Of a stretch of DNA of 64,000 nt, positions 10,607 through 50,231 are shown piece after piece (positions within the stretch are counted from its first letter, which is position 1; every line of letters begins with the position of its first letter). Both the position numbers and the translations under genes were made by a program. The stretch is from Blastocladiella emersonii ATCC 22665 (taxonomy: Eukaryota; Fungi; Blastocladiomycota), in contig JANHCV010000009.1 of assembly GCA_025594325.1 (NCBI GenBank), forward strand, positions 558,001 to 622,000, read 5' to 3'. The notes under the pieces were generated by a model, which did not search any database, was not told the origin of the DNA, and saw only the letters and a program-made list of their open reading frames with translations.

Positions 10607-13600
10607 TCACTCGCGACGCCCCGGCGGCGGCATCTTGGCCATCGTCGACGTCGCCATGGCGCACGTGCGCGCGAAATGCCCAACCTGCCCGCACGCCGTG
10701 CACTTGATCGGGCACTCGGCACTCGTGTGCCCGCGCGAAAAGCAGTTGGAGCAACGCACGTTGGGCGCGGCACGCGCCTCGTTCGGCGACTTGGTGCCAC
10801 CGGGCGCGCCGTTGCCGTTGCGCGGCCCGTTGCCGTTGCGCGGGTGAGGAGGACCCGCGCCGAGAGCACGGTGCGCGGTGCGGCCGGGGAACCCGCTACC
10901 AGACGGAGGAGGCGCGGTGGCGAAGGAGCTGCCGATGAGCGCCGGGTGCTGTGAGACCGTCGCCGTCGTCACGGCCGGTTGAGCCGAGGCCACGACGTCG
11001 ACAGGCGCGGGCGCAGCGGCGGCGGAGGGCGCCGTGTACCGCTCGTACAGTCGCGGGGGCTGGTACCCCGCGGCCGCTGTTACCGCTGCCGCGGGTGCGA
11101 ACGCCGCCGCGACGCGGGCGTCGTCCGAGACCCCACGCTGCGGCGCCGCCGCGCTCGCACCATTGCTGCCGCGCCACATCGCGAGCTCGCCCGAGACCCG
11201 CGCGAGCTGGCCGCGGAGCTCGCCGACGGCGCGGTCGGCCGTGTCGCGGTCCTGCTGCCGCAGCTGCGCGAGCCGCGTGTGCTCGGCCATGAGCTGCCGC
11301 AGCGCGCCCTCGGTGCGCGCGTGCGCCGCCTGCATCGCCGCCAGGGCGCCGCGCAGCTGCTCGTTCTCGTGCACGAGCTGCGGGACCACCGCCTGCAGCT
11401 GCGCCGGCGGGAGGTGCAGGAGCGAGTCGGCGACCGAGAAGGGCGCGGGGGTTGCGGTTGAAGTTGGCGAGGCAGGGCCGAAGATGCTGCCGGTGCCGGT
11501 CGCGAGGGTGGACGCGGTGGTGGGCGGGGCAACGGTTGTGGCAGCGACGGCAGCGAGCGGCGCCGGCGCGGCGAACCCTAGCGGCGTCGATGCCGCGACC
11601 GACGACGCAGACGACGGCCAGGCGCCGCTGCGCGCGGGGCCCGCGACGGACGTGTACGGCCCGCCGACAATCTCGTCCTCGTGCGGGTTGCGCGGGTCGT
11701 GGACCGCCGTAGGCGAGGTGGTCGTGGTGGTCTCGACAGCGACGGGCGCGGCGACGGGCGCAAGGGCGGCGGCGGGAACTGGGCTCGGCTCGCGGCGGCG
11801 GTTGAGCGACGTCGAGTCCTCGAACGGCGTCGGCAGGATCTCGTCGTCGTCGCTCCACTCGCTGCGGTGGCCCTCGCTCTCGTCCTCCCAGTCGGACGTG
11901 GTCTCGTCGCCGTCCGTCTCAGCGGTAGCGACGGCGTCGGAGGAAACGGGCGGAGCCACGCGAGACGCCGCCGGCCCGGGCGGCGCGGGCTTGGTCATGA
12001 CCGCGGGAGCCGCGCGAGCCACCGACGCGGGCGACGCGGGCTTGGCCGGGACCGCCGCGGGCGGCGCGCGAGGAGCGGGGCTGGCGCGGCGCTCGACGGG
12101 CGTCGGTGCGCGCGGACCGACTGCGGGAACGAGCGGGCGGACCGCCGGTGCGGCAACTGCGGCAGCCGCGGGAGCGCGCGCAGCGGGTGCCTTCTTCGAG
12201 GGCGCTGCCGCGGCGGTCGTGGCCGCGAGCGTCTCGGGCGCGGGGGTGGGGACGAGCGGGACCATCGACACGGGCCACGCGGGGAGCGGCGACGGGGTCT
12301 TGGCCGCCGCGGCAGCGGGCTTGGGCTTCGGTGCAGCGGGCGCCGGCGCGGGCTTCGGCGGCTCGGGAACCGAGTGGGCCGCGGCCATGCGGGACCACGA
12401 CCCGGCCGCGGGCGCGGGCGCGGGGGCGGGGACGACGGGCTTGGGGCCCGCGGGCACGGGTTTCGGGGCCGGAGCCGCAACCGTTACCTTGGGAGCAGCG
12501 GAAGCGGTAGCCTTAGGCTTCGGGCTCGGCGACGGCGCGGGAACGGGCGACGCGGGTGCCGAGGCCGTGGGCGGGGTGGGTGAGCGCGCGCCCGCGAGGC
12601 TCGGGTTGGACGCGGTGCGCTTGACGACGGGCGCGGTCATGGCGGCGAGCACGTCCTTGGGGATCACGCGCTCGACGCCGTCGATGCTGACCGAGTTGTG
12701 GCCGTCGGCGGCGGCCGCGGCGGGGGTCGACGGACGCGAGGCGGAGGGCGACTTGGCGGGAGCGGCGGCGGGCTTCTTGGCATCGGGCTGCTTCTTCTGC
12801 TTCTTGGCGGCCGCCGCAACCGGAGTCGGAGTGACGGGCTCGGGCGCGCCGACCTGCGACGACGGTCCGGGCATCGAAGCAGCGGGCGACGCGGGGCCCG
12901 AGGTGACAACGGCGGGCTTGACGGGCGTCGACGCGGTCGTCGGGCTCGACGGCGCGCTCGGCGCGGGGCTCGCGGTGGTGCTACCCGTGCGCTTGACGGT
13001 CGCCGAGCGCGACGTGAGGACGACGGGGCCGGGCGGTTTCGACGCGCCGGCGGGCAAGACGACGGGGGTCATCTTGGCGGCCTTGGCCGCGGGCGCCGTG
13101 TTGCCGAGCGGCGGGGTGGGGATCGGCGCGATGGCGGGCGACTGCGCGGCGGAGGCACCGGCCGTCTTGCCCTTCCCCTTGGCCTTCTTGCCGGGCGAGG
13201 CGGCGCCGAACAGCTCGGCCTCCTTGGCCTTGGTCCACTCGCCGGCGGCGATGCGGGCCATGTCGTCGAGCAGGACGTTGCGGAGGCTGAGGTCGAGCGT
13301 GCGCATGCCGGCCTCGAGCCCGTCCTCGTACAGGTCCATGACGGACTCGCAGCGCGGGCCGAGCGCGTCGAACTCGGCCTCCATGGCCTCGTTGACGAGC
13401 TTGAGCGCCGCGGCCTCGCGCACCTCGCACTCGTGCAGGAAGCACGACACGACCATGAGCGTCAGGGTGAGCGCGGTGCGGTCGTCGCCGGTCGCGGTGC
13501 GCAGGTGGGCGATGCCCGCGGCGAAGTGCGCGGCGGCCGCGTTCTCGAGGCGGCGGAACGCCTTGCGCGACTCGGCGTTGCCCGCGCGGTCGAGCCGGTG

Positions 13601-15151
13601 GCCGACGTTGGTCGAGTTGGCGGGGACCACGGCCCACGCGGCGCGCAGCGCGTCCACGTCGTCGACGACCGCCTGGTGCTTGGTGTGCGCGTGCGACACG
13701 AGCGTCTTGAGCGACGCCACGGCCGACTGCGCAAACGCCTTGGCCTCGGCGGCGATCTCGGCGCCCATGCGCGACGCGAGCTCTTCCTGCGGCGCGAGCG
13801 CCGCGATCGCCTTGTTGGCCACGTCGACGAGGTCGTAAGCGATATCGAGCAGCTTCTGCCCCGCCTCCGGGATCACCTCGAGGCTCTGCACGCGGTGGAA
13901 CTCGACAAAGTCGTCGAGGAACGCCGTGTACCGGTCGTCAATGGACGCGAGCGCGGCGGGGTCAGTGTGCTTGCGGCGGCTCTTGAACTGGTTGGTGATG
14001 TTGGCCCAGTAGTCGGCGAACTTGGTGCGGGCGTCGGCGGCGGCAGCGAGCTTGGCCTCGGTCTCGGCGAGCACGGCGGCGCGGCGGGTCTCGATGGCGA
14101 GCATGTCGGCGACGACGGCGCGCAGCGGGGCCCACGCCTTGTCGGAGGCGGCGGCGAGCGCAGCCTTGTAGCGGGCCTGGAGGTTGGTCGAGTCGGTCTC
14201 GACGATCTCGCGCTCGCGCTCGACCTCGGCGGGGCGCAGCAGCTCCTCGGGGTCGATGATCTGGATCTCCTCGTCGCGGTGCAGCAGGCGCATGAGGCGG
14301 GCCGACTCGGCGGCGAACTGCGACTTTTTCGCGTCGTAGTTGACAATGTGGAACACGGTCTCGGCGGGCTCGGCGTGGTCGTGCTCGCCGTCCTCGTCGT
14401 CGCAGTGGTCTGAGCACGTGCACTCGACGGCCATGCGCTCGGGCAGCTCGTCCTCGGAGCACGGCTGCAGCGTCTTGTACACCTCGGCGAAGATCGGCGA
14501 GAAGCTGAGCGGCTCGACCTCGAAGATCTCGGCCAGGCCCGTCGGCGACTTGAGGTAGTCGGTGACAAAGGCCGAGAGCAGCGTCATGGGGCTCGCTGCG
14601 GGAGCGGACGCGTCGGAGAACCGCTTGCCGGGCTGCGACTGCGGCTGCGACTGCTTCTTGCCGCCCTTGGCCGAGCCCTTGCCCTTTGCGGAGGATGTCG
14701 ATGACGACGACGACTCGCCGGATTCGCGGGACCGCGCGTCGGCCGCAGCCGCAGCGGCAGCCGAGGCAGCCTCGCGCGCCGAGTTGAGCGCGGCGAGAAT
14801 GCGCTCCTCCCACATCAGGATCACGTCGGGCGGCGGGACCTTGCGTGGCTCAGGGACCTACGCGCGCATGAAAAGGAAGTGTGAGACACGAGTTTGCGTG
14901 ATGGCTAAGTGATCCCGCGCACGACGGCAACGTACAGTGGGATCTATTGAGTCGAACGAAATGACGCTCGCGCTCGAAGCGGTACCCGTCGGGTAGAGGG
15001 CCTTGAAGATGACCTGGGCCCAGTCGGCGTAGATCGGGGTGGTGGTGCGCAGCTCCTTGACGACGGCGTCGCGCGCGACGCGCAGCGCCGGGTACTGGTC
15101 GGCGTACGGCGCAAACGACGCGAGGATCGCCTGCGGGCTGTCGCTGGCCAT
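10607..15151 (-). CDS. Large protein (~1488 aa): helical N-terminus, Pro/Ala-rich middle, coiled coil, two C-terminal CCHC zinc knuckles; intron 14858-14935
   Basis: 1405-aa ORF plus a 72-codon exon 1 joined by a phase-0 gtacgt...tag intron. C-terminal CSNCFSRGHTSAEC and CTACGQVGHFARTC. Confidence 0.75.
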
Positions 15152-28572: not shown

Positions 28573-30120
28573 TCATGGGTTCGCCTGCTGCTGCTGCGGC
28601 TGGCCCGTGCCGCCGTCGCCCTGCTGCTGCGCCTGCTGTTGGTGGTACTCGACGTGCTGCTGCTGGTGCATGACCTGGGCCGCGCCCGCGCGCTGCTGTG
28701 CGTCGAGCGCCATGGCGGCGACATCGGGCGTGACGGTGGTGGTGCCGACGAGGTGCGGGTGGTGGTGGTGGACCATGGGGCTCGCGGCGGCGCCGGCGGC
28801 GGCGGCCTGCGACGACGCCATGCTGTTGGTGTCCATGAAGTGCGCGTACGTCGCCGCTGCGGCTGCTGCTGCCGCGGCATCCGCGTCGGCGGGTTGCTGC
28901 TGTTGTTGCTGAGATGGGTCGTGGTGGACCTGCTGGAACGGCCGCTGCTGCTGCTGGGACGGGTCCGCGTGCTGGAACGGCTGCTGGTCGGGGTGGTCGT
29001 GACCCTGCTGCGGGTGCATGGCCGGGTGGTGGTGGGCGTGCGGGTGCGGGAGCTGCGGCGGGGGCGGCAATGGCGGCTGCTGCTGCTGCTGCGCGCCCAT
29101 CGGGACCATGTGCTGCTGCTGTTGCTGTCCTGGTGGATGATGGTGCTGCTGCTGGGCCATGAGGTTCGGGTCGTAGGCCTGCATCTGCATCGCGTACTGC
29201 TGCTGCTGCTGCTGCTGGTCGGGGTGGTGGTACATCTGCTGCTGCTGAGGCTGCGGCTGCTGCTGCGGGCTCATGAAGAACCCCGCCTGCTGCTGCTGCT
29301 GCTGCTGCTGCGGGTGCGGGTGGTGCTGGGCGGGGATCGCGGCGGTGACGAGGTTGCCGTTGGCGTCGACGTACTGGGTCTGGACCATGCCGGCGGCGGC
29401 AGCGGCGGCAAAGTCGGGCATGCCGTGCGGGTGGTGGTGGTGCTGGTGCTGCTGGTGCTGGTGGTGCATCTGGGCCGCCGCGACCGCCGCCGCGCTGGTC
29501 TTCCCGCCCGCCGCCGCCCCGCCGGCAGCCGCGGCGCGGTAGTTCGCGGCGGGGTCCTCGCGCGGGACGATATCGATGAGAAAGTCGTACTGGTCCGACT
29601 TGGTGACGGCGGTCGAGATATCGCTGCGCTGGAGCGTGCGGCGCTTGTTCTCCTCGGCGATCATCCACGCGCGCAGGGTGAGCTCGGAGATGAAGATCTC
29701 GCACGCCTTCGAGAAGATGAGCGGGGCCTCGGACGCGACCATCTGGGCCACGTCCGGGTCGCTCTTCATCACCTTCTTGATGCGGGCGAGCGGCAGCGGG
29801 TGGTTCTTGAAGTCAATGTCGGCCTGCTCGAGCTGCTGCAGCTGCGTCTGCCAGAACTGCTGCACGATCGCCGTCAGCGGGTCCGCCGGCTCGCCCGAAG
29901 TCGTCGTCTCCATGAGCACGCCCGAGGGGGGAGGCGGCGGCGGCGGCATGGACGACGATGAGCCGGGCGTCTGCTGCTGCTGCGGCTGCTGCGCGGACGG
30001 CGCGGGGGTGCCGGCCATGCCGACGGCGGGCGACGGCGCGTCGACGGCCATGCCCTCGCCGGGCGCCGAGCCAGCGGCGCTCGCGGGCGGGTTCTCGGGT
30101 TGCGGTGGTGGCTGCTGCAT
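28573..30120 (-). CDS. HAP5: CCAAT-binding factor subunit C (NF-YC/Hap5) with poly-Q/His tail
   Basis: Histone-fold sequence LPLARIKKVMKSDPDV...SEAPLIFSKACEIFISELTLRAW...RRTLQRSDI...DFLIDIVPRE. Alternative ATG at 30132. Confidence 0.93.
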   Translation of the reverse strand: MQQPPPQPENPPASAAGSAPGEGMAVDAPSPAVGMAGTPAPSAQQPQQQQTPGSSSSMPPPPPPPSGVLMETTTSGEPADPLTAIVQQFWQTQLQQLEQADIDFKNHPLPLARIKKVMKSDPDVAQMVASEAPLIFSKACEIFISELTLRAWMIAEENKRRTLQRSDISTAVTKSDQYDFLIDIVPREDPAANYRAAAAGGAAAGGKTSAAAVAAAQMHHQHQQHQHHHHPHGMPDFAAAAAAGMVQTQYVDANGNLVTAAIPAQHHPHPQQQQQQQQAGFFMSPQQQPQPQQQQMYHHPDQQQQQQQYAMQMQAYDPNLMAQQQHHHPPGQQQQQHMVPMGAQQQQQPPLPPPPQLPHPHAHHHPAMHPQQGHDHPDQQPFQHADPSQQQQRPFQQVHHDPSQQQQQQPADADAAAAAAAAATYAHFMDTNSMASSQAAAAGAAASPMVHHHHPHLVGTTTVTPDVAAMALDAQQRAGAAQVMHQQQHVEYHQQQAQQQGDGGTGQPQQQQANP

Positions 30121-30320
30121 GGTAGATCGCATGGAGGGTCAGAGAGCGTCGATGGATGGTGGCGCGCCTCGGAAGTCAGCGGCCCTGCCCGAAATAGACA
30201 CCGACGGGGGTGGCAGGCCGCTCGCGTGCGCTTGTTCCCGCGTCCTTGATCCACGCGAGAGCGCATCGCGTCGCCTTCACCGCGCCGCCGATCGCCTCTC
30301 TCTCCCCCTCTAGACTTTGC

Positions 30321-37522: not shown

Positions 37523-37978
37523 AGTGCTACCTTGGCCTTGGCCAGCGCGCGCGACACCTTGAAGGCGGCGAGGCGCGCAACTCAAGCAGAAGCTCAGCAG
37601 CGCAAACTTGCCGAAAAGCAACTTGCTCATGACTTCTCAGCTGAAGGCTAGCGCGGGGCACAGCAGGTGCTCTCGCGCGGCGAAGGTCAAGGTCAAGGGC
37701 GCGACTCAGAACGCGACTTATCATAGTATGGTCAATTTCCAGCGACGCGGTCGCGAATCGCGAACGATCAACCGCTCCGTCATCCTTGATCAGATCACAC
37801 ACGAGAGAGAACGATGATGGAGAAAGCTCAACCGCAGCTTTATTACCGACAAGCGGCGATAGGCGACAGGAGCGAGGGGGAGAAGGCGAGAGAACAACGA
37901 GGAGGGAGGGAGAACCGACAAAGGGAGGAGAGCAGGAAGAAGAGCAAAGAGGGGGGAGGCCAGACGGTCGCGAGGGGC

Positions 37979-38848
37979 TTAGTGGCAGCCGTCGCCGTAG
38001 TAGCCCGAGTCGTACGAGCCGTACGAGTCGTCGCCGTAGTACCCGGAGTCGTAGCCCTTCGAGTCGTCGCCGTAGTAGCCCGAGTCGTAGCCCTTCGAGT
38101 CGTCGCCGTAGTAGCCCGAGTCGTAGCCCTTGGAGTCGTCGCCGTAGTAGCCCGAGTCGTAGCCCTTGGAGTCATCGCCATAGTAGCCGGAATCGTAGCC
38201 GTACGAGTCGTCGCCGTAGTAGCCCGAGTCGTAGCCGTACGAGTCGTCGCCGTAGTAGCCCGAGTCGTAGCCCTTCGAGTCGTCGCCGTAGTAGCCCGAG
38301 TCGTAGCCCTTCGAGTCGTCGCCGTAGTAGCCCGAGTCGTAGCCCTTCGAGTCGTCGCCGTAGTACCCGGAGTCGTAGCCCTTCGAGTCGTCGCCGTAGT
38401 AGCCCGAGTCGTAGCCCTTCGAGTCGTCGCCGTAGTAGCCCGAGTCGTAGCCCTTCGAGTCGTCGCCGTAGTAGCCCGAGTCGTAGCCCTTGGAGTCGTC
38501 GCCGTAGTAGCCCGAGTCGTAGCCCTTGGAGTCATCGCCATAGTAGCCGGAATCGTAGCCGTACGAGTCGTCGCCGTAGTAGCCCGAGTCGTAGCCGTAC
38601 GAGTCGTCGCCGTAGTAGCCCGAGTCGTAGCCCTTCGAGTCGTCGCCGTAGTAGCCCGAGTCGTAGCCCTTCGAGTCGTCGCCGTAGTACCCGGAGTCGT
38701 AGCCCTTCGAGTCGTCGCCGTAGTAGCCCGAGTCGTAGCCCTTCGAGTCGTCGCCGTAGTAGCCCGAGTCGTAGCCCTTCGAGTCGTCGCCGTAGTAGCC
38801 CGAGTCGTAGCTGCCGTACGAGTCGTCGCCGTAGCCGTAGCCAGTCAT
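37979..38848 (-). CDS. Gly/Tyr/Asp/Ser tandem-repeat protein (GYDSGYYGDDSK/Y)n, 289 aa, no signal peptide
   Basis: ATG in ttcaccATG context with an AT-rich TATA-like element near 39000. There are 21 12-aa units plus 2 terminal 13-aa units. Nucleotide variation among units is synonymous in this frame apart from the K/Y switch. Confidence 0.85.
   Translation of the reverse strand: MTGYGYGDDSYGSYDSGYYGDDSKGYDSGYYGDDSKGYDSGYYGDDSKGYDSGYYGDDSKGYDSGYYGDDSKGYDSGYYGDDSYGYDSGYYGDDSYGYDSGYYGDDSKGYDSGYYGDDSKGYDSGYYGDDSKGYDSGYYGDDSKGYDSGYYGDDSKGYDSGYYGDDSKGYDSGYYGDDSKGYDSGYYGDDSKGYDSGYYGDDSYGYDSGYYGDDSYGYDSGYYGDDSKGYDSGYYGDDSKGYDSGYYGDDSKGYDSGYYGDDSKGYDSGYYGDDSYGSYDSGYYGDGCH
37990..38830. repeat. 36-bp coding tandem array with a 360-bp higher-order duplication
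   Basis: Variant units recur at exactly 360-nt offset; for example 38101-38280 is identical to 38461-38640. Confidence 0.95.
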
Positions 38849-39892
38849 GGTGAAGGAGGGGGTGGGTGGTGGGGAGAGGAGGGGAGGCTGTGCGACCGAA
38901 GGCGCAGGCGGAGGTGTGCAAGGGTGCAAGGGAGGGGAGAGAGGACTGGGAGGTGCTCGCTGTCGAATCGAGAGGGAGGGATGCGGGGCGGCGGCCGGTA
39001 TTTATCGGCGGGCCGGGTCGAGGGCGGGGACGGCGAGGGCGGAGGCGGCGAGCAGCGAGTGGCGGCAGTCGGCGACGCGCTCGGGTCGGGATCCAGCGAG
39101 GAAGGCGGCGAGAAGGACGCGGAGCACGACGCGAAGCTAGCGCGTAGATCCACTTCCGCAGCCACGGTGAGCGGCCGCGGTGCGCAGCTTGCCTCCTTTG
39201 CCGATCGATGGCGGATCCCGTCGGCGTCGTGACGGTGGAAGGGACGCGCCGCGAATGGATCTAGCCTTCAGCTCCAGTTCCGGTGCGGCGGCGGCGGGAT
39301 CCCGATCGCGGCCACGCGCGCACCTTGGCTCCCTCGCTGGTCGGCGCGGCGCCTAGCTCCATACGCCAGCTGGCGCACGGAGCTAGACGCCACCTTCCTG
39401 AAGCGTCGGCAGGGGCACTCGGCGCGATCTCGACGCCAGCGCTAGCCACTGCGCTAGATCCAGTCGCTCGAGCCGCGAGGCGTCGGGACGCCGACATGAG
39501 GGCAGGCTCCACTTTCGCGGAGCTATGCGTGGCGGCTGCGGCGCGCTGCGCGTTGCATCCAGTTGCTTTCCATTTGCTTGCATCCGCGTCGGCAGGGACC
39601 CGTGGGAAGGGGAGGCGGGTGCGCAAAGTGGCCGGGATGGAAAGTTGTCTCTCGGCTCGCGTTTCATCCGCGAGCGCCGGTCACGCCTTTTCGCGACGCG
39701 TCCTCGCACGCGCGAGGGGGAGCCGAGAGACACGAGCGACTTCCCAATCGCGGAGAGCGGCCAAGAGGTTCAAGTTGAAAGCAAAGCTAATTATATAGTA
39801 CACTAGGTTCGAACGATACAAATACATACACAACCGACACCCACTCGACTCGGAGCGCGTACACGCGCTCCCTCCATTCCTCCCTCCCTCCA

Positions 39893-41302
39893 TCAGATCA
39901 GCGCCGCCACGGCCACGAACACGGCGTCGGGTGCGGGCGCGATCAGAGGCATCTCGATGTGGCCAAAGAACTCGACCGCCTTGGCCACGTTCTTGGCATA
40001 CGACCCGTCGACGGTCGACACCTCGGCCGTGCACAGCGTCGCCAGCACGGGCGCGACGAGCGGCACCATGCGGGGCGTGCAGTTGGCCGACGTCGCGGCC
40101 ATCATCTTGTTCTCCATGAGCATCTTGATGCCCTTGGTCTTGTCGCACACGTTGTTGAGCGCCAGGATGCGCTTGAGCGCGCGGCGCTCGTGCGGCGCCA
40201 TCTTGAACGCCTTGTCGGCGTCGATGAACTCGAGCGCGAGGCTGATCGCGTTGAGCGTCGAAAAATCCGAGTTCGACCGGAGGCAGTGCTGGTATCGCGC
40301 GCGTGTTGAGTGTGTGAGTGGGCGGGCTCTCGATGCGGGCGACTTGAGGCGAGAGCGAAGTACCTCGGCCACCCTGATCCACTTCTGGACGACCGCATCG
40401 TCCAGCGACGCGGCGCTCTTGACCGACATCTTGACAAAGTTGTAAATCCCGTTGTGTACCGTGGTCTTGTTGTTTTCCCCGAGGGCCTTGGCCACGGCGG
40501 ACCCGAGCACCTTGGGGTCAGCCGACCCGACGCCGCGGGCGGCCGCGCGGACGTTATCGACGGTCTTGACGAGCTCGGGCACGGCGAGCGCGGTCAGCGC
40601 CTTGGCGAGGTCGCGCGACGGGACCTCGAGCACGACGCGGGCGGCCTGGGCGCCCGCCGACGCGTCGCCCTGGTCGAGACCGTCGGCGCGCGTGACGATG
40701 CCCGCGACCTTGTTGAAGGCGAAGCGAGCGGCGCGACGCAGCTTCGAGTCCTTGGGCGTCTTGAACGGCTTGGCCGGCTTGACGGCCGAGGCCGAGGTGA
40801 TGGAGGTCGAGATCTTGACAGCGGCGGTGTCGATCTCGAGGTGCAGCTGCTGCTCGGGGACCGTGAGCGGAGCGACGGGGGTCTGGGCGATGCGAGAGGA
40901 GGGTGCGTGAGCATGGCGGGTCATGAGAAAAACCATTGAGTCGAGAGAACGTACCCCAGACAGGCTGAGCAGCGACGCCCAGGCGCGGAGGCACTTGAAG
41001 GGCACCGCGAGCGCGTCGACGACCTGGCCGGCGAACTTGTTGAAGAACGACGACAGCGGCTTGGAGGTCGAGGTGGCGGCCGCCGCGCTAGCGGTGACGG
41101 TCGTGGCCAGACCCGGTGGCGCCTTCATGCGGGCGAGCGCCGAGGCGGCAGTCGTGGCGGACGAGGCGAGCGGGTCAAGCTCGGCGATGTGGAGGGTCTG
41201 CTCGGCGAGCAAGTCGCGCTTGACCGACGGCGTGGCGCTGGATTGGGCAAGCTGGCGATCACCGCGGCGCCGGACGTCGGGTAGGCGGGAGCGTCCAGAC
41301 AT
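39893..41302 (-). CDS. Divergent RasGEF (CDC25-like) domain protein; introns 40883-40954 and 40289-40363
   Basis: After splicing, NGIYNFVKMSV...VQKWIRVAEHCLRSNSDFSTLNAISLAL and MVPLVAPVLATL resemble conserved CDC25 regions. Alternative ATG at 41128. Confidence 0.55.
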   Translation of the reverse strand: MSGRSRLPDVRRRGDRQLAQSSATPSVKRDLLAEQTLHIAELDPLASSATTAASALARMKAPPGLATTVTASAAAATSTSKPLSSFFNKFAGQVVDALAVPFKCLRAWASLLSLSGVRSLDSMVFLMTRHAHAPSSRIAQTPVAPLTVPEQQLHLEIDTAAVKISTSITSASAVKPAKPFKTPKDSKLRRAARFAFNKVAGIVTRADGLDQGDASAGAQAARVVLEVPSRDLAKALTALAVPELVKTVDNVRAAARGVGSADPKVLGSAVAKALGENNKTTVHNGIYNFVKMSVKSAASLDDAVVQKWIRVAEVLRSRLKSPASRARPLTHSTRARYQHCLRSNSDFSTLNAISLALEFIDADKAFKMAPHERRALKRILALNNVCDKTKGIKMLMENKMMAATSANCTPRMVPLVAPVLATLCTAEVSTVDGSYAKNVAKAVEFFGHIEMPLIAPAPDAVFVAVAALI

Positions 41303-41697
41303 GCTCGACCGTGCCCGGATTCGATTGCATGGAGACGTTCATTCGTTCAAGGGAAATGCCAACGTTGCAAGGGGAGACCAGTCGCCGGCAGGGGGTGCTT
41401 TCGCCGGCCGAGAAGGCGCGCGTCGCACGTTTCAAGCCTCCCGCGTGCCAGTCACGCCATTTCGCGACGCGTCTCCTGTCTCGCGCTGGCCGCCGTAGGG
41501 TCAGTCGGCTTTCCAAAGCAAGCTGGCGGGTGCCTCCACGTTTTAGCGAGGTGGCCCTCGCGGGCCCAGCACGAGCCGGTCAGCAGGTGCAGATCCGGCT
41601 CGCGTGCACGCGCACCGTTCTCCACGCGCGCGAGGGGAACGCGGCAGCGCCCACATGGGTTTTCGCTAGCGCTCCGCTTCGAGCGACCTCGGCAGAG

Positions 41698-49700: not shown

Positions 49701-50231
49701 TCTGCCGTTGATGAAGACGAGGGAACAAGCCGTCTCGACGATGCAGCGATGCCGTTAGGGACGGAATCAGCACGTTCGTGGCGGCTCAGATCCGTGAACC
49801 TTCACGGTCTGAACGCAGTGGCCGAGCGGCTCACACCATGCTCGTGGGCCGATTGCACTTAGTCATGGTCACATTCATTCGCTAGCGTATGCGTAGACAT
49901 CTGCGCTGAGGAGGAGCCGCCGTCGCGAGTTGCGGCTCGAGCAGCTTTGCCTCGCAAGTCCGCGTTTCAAGCCTCCCGCGTGCCGGTCACGCCTTTTTGC
50001 GACGCGTCTCATGTCCCGCACTGGCTCGCCCAAGGTCGGTTGACCTTCCAAAACGGGCCACAGGGCAACGCAAAAGTCCTGCAAGGTGGCCCGCGAGGGC
50101 CCAGTAACGCGCGCGTGCACGCACGCCGGCCGCTTCGCCACACCTTCGTGCGCGTGCGCGCGAGCGAGATGGTGGCGGCAGCGCCCACATGGGTTTCCAC
50201 TGCCGACCCGCCCCAAGCGACCTCGGCAGAG

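Follow-up and report, generated by a model that had tools for sequence, protein, structure and literature searches.

A family of unannotated, tyrosine-rich acidic tandem-repeat genes in Blastocladiella emersonii

The analysis of a 64,000-nucleotide stretch of the Blastocladiella emersonii ATCC 22665 genome (contig 21, 558001-622000; referred to here as the window, with positions counted from its first letter) concerned a tandem-repeat gene on the minus strand and its relatives in the same genome. The gene is an intronless open reading frame (ORF) at 37979-38848, with the ATG at 38848 and a TAA stop codon at 37979-37981, and has 289 codons. The codon-by-codon read-out of the predicted protein gave a head of MTGYGYGDDSY, followed by 23 cores of the form GYDSGYYGDDS[K/Y] and a tail of GDGCH. 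The units included 21 contiguous 12-residue units and two 13-residue variants, and 17 of the 23 closed with a single Lys. An earlier reading of this DNA, referred to here as the original prediction, had described 23 near-perfect units, a GCH C-terminus and the lack of an N-terminal hydrophobic signal, all of which were borne out. Met1 is the only Leu, Ile, Val, Met, Phe or Trp residue among the 289 amino acids, and no signal peptide was identified, the first 30 residues being free of hydrophobic residues beyond Met1. The protein is composed of Tyr (27%), Gly (25%), Asp (24%), Ser (17%) and Lys (6%); the predicted richness in Tyr was thus upheld, with a measured figure slightly different from the approximately 25% first given. 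There was no Arg or Gln in the protein, and likewise no KR dibasic site. The net charge is approximately -53 at pH 7, and the grand average of hydropathy (GRAVY) is -1.66. The GC content at third codon positions was 0.97 for the gene versus 0.95 for the neighbouring isopropylmalate synthase (IPMS) gene.

At the DNA level, the gene carries a 36-bp tandem array on the minus strand at 37990-38834, with 23.3 copies (Tandem Repeats Finder score of 1433, 93% matches, 0% indels). The array contains a higher-order duplication, in which the first arm (38046-38329, minus strand) is identical to the second (38406-38689, minus strand). This exact self-match of 284 nt lies at a lag of 360 bp, equal to ten units, in agreement with the 360-bp duplication originally noted. 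Within the 21 contiguous canonical units, all point differences outside position 12 were synonymous third-position changes (TCG/TCC, GGC/GGG, GAC/GAT and TAC/TAT). The claim that units differ only synonymously therefore stands for these units but fails at position 12, the sole amino acid polymorphism, where Lys (AAG) was present in 17 units and Tyr (TAC) in six. The synonymous variants differ from array to array in the genome, with GGG dominant in one array and GGT common in another, which indicates homogenisation within each array. Both the variants peculiar to each array and the 360-bp block are in keeping with the unequal crossing-over that had been proposed.

The sequences flanking the ORF look like those of a compact eukaryotic transcription unit, as judged from their predicted signals. 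A C/T-rich predicted 5' untranslated region without an upstream ATG lies at 38849-38975 (minus strand), its 5' boundary being inferred from the position of the TATA box, and this stretch was retained at 12 loci with 87-100% identity. Paralogues differ in this leader by indels whose lengths are not multiples of three; the leader is thus noncoding, and it is unlikely to conceal an exon for a signal peptide. The paralogues share the start context CACC-ATG. The TATA-like box GATAAATA, at 38999-39006 (minus strand), precedes the ATG by approximately 155 nt. Every aligned paralogue has retained it, the divergent loci L009, L038 and L039 included. Approximately 135 nt past the stop codon, an AATAAA polyadenylation-type signal was observed at 37839-37844 (minus strand); AATAAA was also present in L011, and AATATA occupied that position in L008 and L012.

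A further upstream element, with the core GACGCGTCGCGAAAAGGCGTGAC, lies at 39671-39702 (minus strand), 823-854 nt upstream of the ATG. The element was found at -630 to -854 in 12 of the 13 paralogues examined. It spans approximately 24 nt, and its core GACGCGTCGCGAAAWGGCGTGAC gave 61 sites in the genome (allowing at most one mismatch in the 15-nt core) versus one for the reversed control; the sequences flanking these sites were unrelated to one another. Among the ORFs near 13 non-family sites, one encodes a flagellar SPEF2 domain and another a choline-transporter-like domain. The remaining ORFs near these sites had no Pfam match, and several resembled wrong-frame ORFs. The element was additionally seen in the window at 41442-41473 and 49977-50008; the upstream regions of both lectin genes of the window contain it.

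The window ORF is very probably a real protein-coding gene on the minus strand, judging by its pattern of substitution and the conservation of its frame. To measure selection, 156 units from eight intact family members were scanned as DNA irrespective of translation. The single-base states observed included 17 of the 21 possible synonymous states and 14 of the 78 possible nonsynonymous states (Fisher p = 1.4 × 10−7). The frame encoding the Tyr-rich protein was the only one of the six without stop codons in all nine intact genes tested. Selection on the peptide in this frame, as originally predicted, is thus supported by both the synonymous excess and the openness of the frame. In the Ala-rich paralogue L009, which has 57% identity, the spacer is wholly altered and the core Y[D/E]SGYYGD is retained. 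The GYYGD coding pattern occurred 210 times in the genome versus once for the reversed control, and the pattern matches listed mapped to family loci, save two singletons.

It is highly improbable that the locus makes no functional protein, being instead a minisatellite with an incidental ORF, a gene whose product is read in another frame, such as a Ser/Arg-rich antisense ORF, or an artefact of assembly. Two antisense frames are indeed open in the window copy (37786-39232, plus strand), one encoding a Ser/Arg-rich 12-residue repeat and the other a Val/Ala/Arg repeat, and no copy of the family is annotated in the public proteome. However, both of these frames gain stop codons in the paralogues L009 and L011, so that they are by-products of the repeat. 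The promoter and the polyadenylation signal likewise point along the minus strand, and start and stop codons are kept at 12 loci with unique flanks, in addition to the surplus of synonymous changes. The published assembly was obtained with PacBio HiFi reads and comprises 21 contigs with an N50 of 2.02 Mb (PMC9730499). An assembly artefact, which the original prediction had itself raised as a possible undoing, is unlikely because such reads are assumed to be far longer than the 870-bp array and because the family occupies 15 loci with unique flanks. The open antisense ORFs could mislead gene finders.

The genome search covered the 32.65-Mb, 21-contig assembly, and the locus count was built from a protein search, the GYYGD coding pattern, a promoter DNA search and an N-terminal codon pattern. 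In the protein search, family members, among them the window gene itself, were located on contigs 1, 11, 16, 18 and 21. The DNA search with 167 nt of promoter and leader returned 12 loci and a weaker match that led to a subfamily with a nine-residue repeat; the search of the genome with the N-terminal codon pattern added no further loci. The family total was 15 loci, of which 12 were intact and encoded proteins of 101 to 509 amino acids. Of the three damaged loci, L013 is cut short by a TAG at codon 10, and the tails of L010 and L014 are frameshifted. Across the family, the number of Tyr/Gly/Asp/Ser units ranged from 7 to 41, and the core-to-core spacing from 12 to 16 residues.

The intact members fell into four groups. 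The first includes the window gene, and is made up of long Lys-type genes ending in GCH. The second consists of short genes of 13-residue units with a GCC end, from which Lys is nearly absent, and the third of the Ala-rich L009 with a GCA end. The fourth is the nine-residue-repeat pair, both intact: L038 (289 amino acids; L038:1608-2477, corresponding to C11:2459107-2459973) and L039 (257 amino acids; L039:1352-2125, corresponding to C11:2201651 onward). Their repeat is GGDSY[N/G]SGY, with no Lys, Arg or His, and their end is GDGCCN. Both have the TATA box, leader start and N-terminus of the family, and both were missed by the initial protein search. The family-wide N-terminus is MTGY.YG, with the exceptions of MATIGYG in L009 and MSGYGYG in the broken L013. 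Regularly spaced Tyr residues, accompanied by Gly/Ser and Asp, are common to all groups, as is a Cys located one or two residues from the C-terminus. The family ends were GCH, GCC, GCCN, GCA or GCS; among prenylation motifs, there was no CaaX box and no Rab domain. Tyr makes up 23-29% and Asp 12-24% of the proteins, and the net charge ranges from -20 to -89. Five members hold only 0-3 basic residues, and Lys is scarce or lacking altogether in six of the intact members (L008, L009, L011, L012, L038 and L039).

Two further features of the family concern its duplication. L002 and L003 (C1:1350856-1356528) encode identical proteins in divergent orientation approximately 4.1 kb apart; the spacer between them carries inverted fragments of an upstream ORF, so that the locus as a whole is a large and recent palindromic duplication. 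In the window, this upstream ORF lies at 39893-41302 (minus strand) and encodes 469 amino acids, with no Pfam match even at E 10. Copies or fragments of it are present approximately 1 kb upstream of nine family members in the same orientation; genome-wide they number about ten, many of them truncated or with stop codons. Because several copies are damaged in this way, the pairing of this ORF with the repeat gene looks less like a functional partnership than like the trace left by duplication of a whole segment. Elsewhere in the window, an ORF of 519 amino acids at 28573-30132 (minus strand) has a histone-fold CBF/NF-Y domain, and one of 1405 amino acids at 10607-14824 (minus strand) has a single C-terminal CCHC zinc knuckle and is otherwise unrecognisable.

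The search for relatives outside this family was negative throughout. The window protein had no Pfam-A family match at E 0.01 or better, and two word-index searches of proteins, one querying the window protein and the other L038, returned nothing at E 0.001 or better. When 1.84 billion representatives were searched exhaustively with phmmer, 127 matches were obtained, all of them unrelated periodic low-complexity proteins, none with the core motif. The ESM Atlas gave no usable match, and metagenomes scanned for codons spelling YDSGYYGDD contained four isolated chance matches and no arrays. No paper was identified by full-text search for family peptide strings, and the B. emersonii expressed sequence tag paper provided no lead. 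The failure of the original prediction to recognise a known family was thus repeated across these searches, and, by sequence, the family is a Tyr/Gly low-complexity repeat protein outside any described family. One weak low-complexity match in the B. emersonii genome, L040 (C1:4267534-4268625), was found to be a long frame of SAFGAP-type Phe-Gly repeats resembling an FG nucleoporin.

Exact look-up in a collection of 15 billion proteins found neither the window protein nor any of eight paralogues, nor either of two ORFs in alternative frames. The neighbouring IPMS protein was present in the public collection under NCBI nr. From these look-ups and searches, the 15-gene family is unannotated and so far known only from the B. 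emersonii genome. The gap in the annotation is probably due to the masking of tandem repeats. As the family goes unannotated, related fungi whose predicted proteomes lack it may still have it in their genomes.

Structure was modelled by single-sequence AlphaFold2, with five models for the window protein and five for L009. The best model of the window protein had a mean predicted local distance difference test (pLDDT) score of 80.8 and showed a solenoid with a strict 12-residue strand pattern per turn. It might be read as a folded beta-solenoid of approximately 12 residues per turn with surface ladders of Tyr, possibly Ca2+-dependent and akin to the beta-helices of RTX or antifreeze proteins. 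A wider structural search with this model matched generic beta-solenoids, including the Tenebrio antifreeze protein 1ezg (Z 6.2, root mean square deviation of 2.5 Å over 82/82 residues), the Ca2+-dependent antifreeze protein 3p4g (Z 10.4) and the curli protein CsgA (Z 10.6). The resemblance to 1ezg and to RTX beta-rolls includes the 12-residue period and a Gly/Asp-rich repeat; however, the window protein has neither a disulfide ladder nor the GGxGxD consensus. The other four models of the window protein had pLDDT scores of 27-34 and all five of L009 had scores of 37 or less, so that nine of the ten models were of low confidence (pLDDT of 37 or less). Foldseek found nothing with the window-protein model at E 0.001 or better. 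Perfect repeats are prone to draw solenoid predictions from single-sequence AlphaFold, and the variable spacing of the cores across the family also sits poorly with a constant turn. The solenoid was dropped as a firm result, since it was not reproduced in four of five window models or five of five L009 models, and a fold of this kind is very unlikely on these models. A largely disordered chain, as most of the models suggest, was taken as the working assumption.

With a probability of roughly 35%, we favour the reading that the product is a self-associating, polyanionic Tyr polymer that is made in bulk and kept inside the cell. In this scheme, the product would stay in the cytoplasm as a largely unfolded polyanion (net charge of -20 to -89), in which Tyr would be essentially the sole sticky residue of the chain. 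It would be synthesised in bulk at one developmental stage, candidates being zoospore formation, encystment and the resistant sporangium. Charge repulsion between Asp residues would keep the chains soluble at first, until neutralisation by multivalent cations (Ca2+, polyamines or basic proteins) or acidification. Once the charge was neutralised, Tyr-Tyr contacts would cause the material to gel or solidify, and it could be fixed or tethered through Tyr oxidation and the terminal Cys. By analogy, numerous promoters of almost the same sequence, the use of optimal codons and differing numbers of repeats make up a pattern typical of bulk material or protective proteins, and not of regulators. In the genome, 17 matches to the tyrosinase domain exceeded the Pfam cut-off, spread over approximately a dozen places (C11:1913907, C6:571201 and C15:898111 among them). 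As judged from these domain matches, the tyrosinase family is expanded in the genome, so that enzymes predicted to be capable of cross-linking exist there. The missing leader, the polyanionic character and the low-confidence models also speak for this reading, as do analogous cases in other zoosporic organisms, namely the Tyr-rich families of the oospore wall and the leaderless PiLLP described below.

Several observations weigh against this reading. Both of the clearly full-length tyrosinases that were read have signal peptides, and hence would act in a different compartment. No tyrosinase gene adjoins any family member among the genome-wide domain matches, and no coherent regulon emerged when one was sought through the shared upstream element at the 13 non-family sites. 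Asp at 24% should oppose self-association, and only eight of the 77 Tyr residues of the window protein (10%) lie in the [G/S]Y[G/S] triplets of FUS-type domains. Furthermore, a soluble ion buffer, protectant or Tyr depot suits the facts nearly as well.

Such a soluble polyanion is a possible alternative, only a little less likely than the favoured reading. Acting through its charge or its composition, it would serve as a high-capacity, low-affinity buffer of Ca2+ or other cations, as a shield for dormant or stressed stages, or as a depot of Tyr, degraded later to supply melanin or wall tanning in the resistant sporangium. Free Tyr dissolves poorly, and insects keep Tyr in Tyr-rich proteins or conjugates. 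Polyphenol oxidase and melanin have been described in Blastocladiella in the older literature, on which the link between a depot and a melanised sporangium is based. The high net negative charge of all members, with almost no basic residues in five of them, the strongly hydrophilic composition, the disordered models and the expanded tyrosinase family are all consistent with this alternative. However, a depot or buffer has no obvious need for an invariant Y[D/E]SGYYGD, a conserved N-terminus or a near-terminal Cys, and Pfam picked out no regular motif for Ca2+ binding.

The original prediction had put forward three candidate functions, namely a wall or adhesive polymer, a condensate or amyloid scaffold, and a multi-core precursor. 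It had likened the protein to the self-assembling low-complexity domains of FUS, and this analogy proved to be loose, given the triplet and Asp contents of the window protein. Like the domains of FUS, EWS and TAF15, the family members are leaderless and predicted to be intracellular, with Tyr spaced in Gly/Ser and practically no aliphatic residues. In the nine-residue-repeat subfamily, L038 and L039, the [G/S]Y[G/S] triplets take up 50% of Tyr; among the 12/13-residue members other than the window protein, they account for 4-27%. The family also differs from the FUS type in its Asp content of 12-24%, in its lack of Gln, and in being an exact tandem array throughout, with no RNA-binding or other domain. 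No homology to FUS-type, eggshell or oomycete wall proteins was detected by the exhaustive phmmer search.

The comparison with structural proteins raises the alternative of an extracellular wall, cyst or adhesive polymer, which would be exported unconventionally and tanned by a secreted tyrosinase or peroxidase. The eggshell (vitelline) proteins of trematodes are Gly/Tyr-rich repeat proteins with signal peptides, which are secreted from vitelline droplets and tanned by tyrosinase. The present family shares with them the short Gly/Tyr/Asp/Lys tandem repeats and the multicopy genes, and tyrosinase genes are abundant in the B. emersonii genome; the window protein, however, is leaderless and far more acidic. 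Among the oomycetes, the Tyr-rich protein families of the oospore wall vary in size and undergo concerted evolution (PMC5999078), and the leaderless, Gly-rich Phytophthora protein PiLLP is required for oospore wall formation (PMC5298957). PiLLP, the His/Ser/Tyr-rich M96 of P. infestans and PoStr of Pythium oligandrum resemble the present family in being lineage-specific, Tyr/Gly/Ser-rich proteins of zoosporic microbes. None of them is Asp-rich or built of an exact 12-residue repeat; they belong to another kingdom and have no sequence relationship, and M96 is secreted, with a His-rich N-terminal third.

An extracellular polymer is unlikely. It would be consistent with a Gly/Tyr tandem-repeat protein from a multigene family, with the signal peptides borne by at least two tyrosinases, and with the precedent of PiLLP. 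Against it, the window protein has no signal peptide and its gene has no space for a leader exon, the known analogues (M96 and the eggshell proteins) are classically secreted, and no secretion-related neighbour gene was seen.

Cleavage at the single Lys was also considered in the original prediction. The protein would then be a multi-core precursor of many copies of a 12-residue Tyr peptide, set free at Lys or through the action of some other protease, like a pheromone or a ribosomally synthesised and post-translationally modified peptide (RiPP). Dikaritin precursors require a signal peptide, KR sites for Kex2 around each core and a UstYa oxidase. Fungal precursors of this class, such as UstA and AprA, resemble the window protein in carrying tandem, short, Tyr-containing peptides, and the Lys that closes most of its units would offer a site for cutting. 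The window protein, however, has neither the leader nor the KR sites, and six intact members have little or no Lys, all of which weakened the proposal. UstYa (DUF3328, PF11807) was unmatched in the genome, which carries little weight as the control genomes were likewise unmatched, and fifteen dispersed copies would be unusual for a RiPP precursor. We regard a multi-core precursor as scarcely credible.

The intracellular, self-associating polymer that we favour may also be put in a more specific form, which is tentative and rather doubtful. It holds that the family represents a type of fungal material protein not known before. This would be a polyanionic Tyr polymer of the cytoplasm, poor in Lys, which would pass from a soluble state to a gel or solid when its Asp residues were neutralised by Ca2+, polyamines or pH, and which would be tethered or cross-linked through the conserved near-terminal Cys and oxidised Tyr. 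Such a gel switch could act at zoospore encystment or in the dormancy of the resistant sporangium.

This whole family of 15 genes is missing from the annotation published for B. emersonii, a model among the early-diverging fungi. Its products are thus invisible to proteomic and expression studies, because such studies rely on that annotation. Adding the family to the annotation would allow a direct search for the diagnostic tryptic peptide GYDSGYYGDDSK (1325.50 Da, monoisotopic). The proteins are compositional extremes, with 23-29% Tyr, up to 24% Asp, and basic and aliphatic residues nearly absent. If they are expressed in bulk, they would provide a natural test of aromatic stickers in a strongly charged chain, and the family might account for a material property of the zoospores, cysts or resistant sporangia of Blastocladiella.

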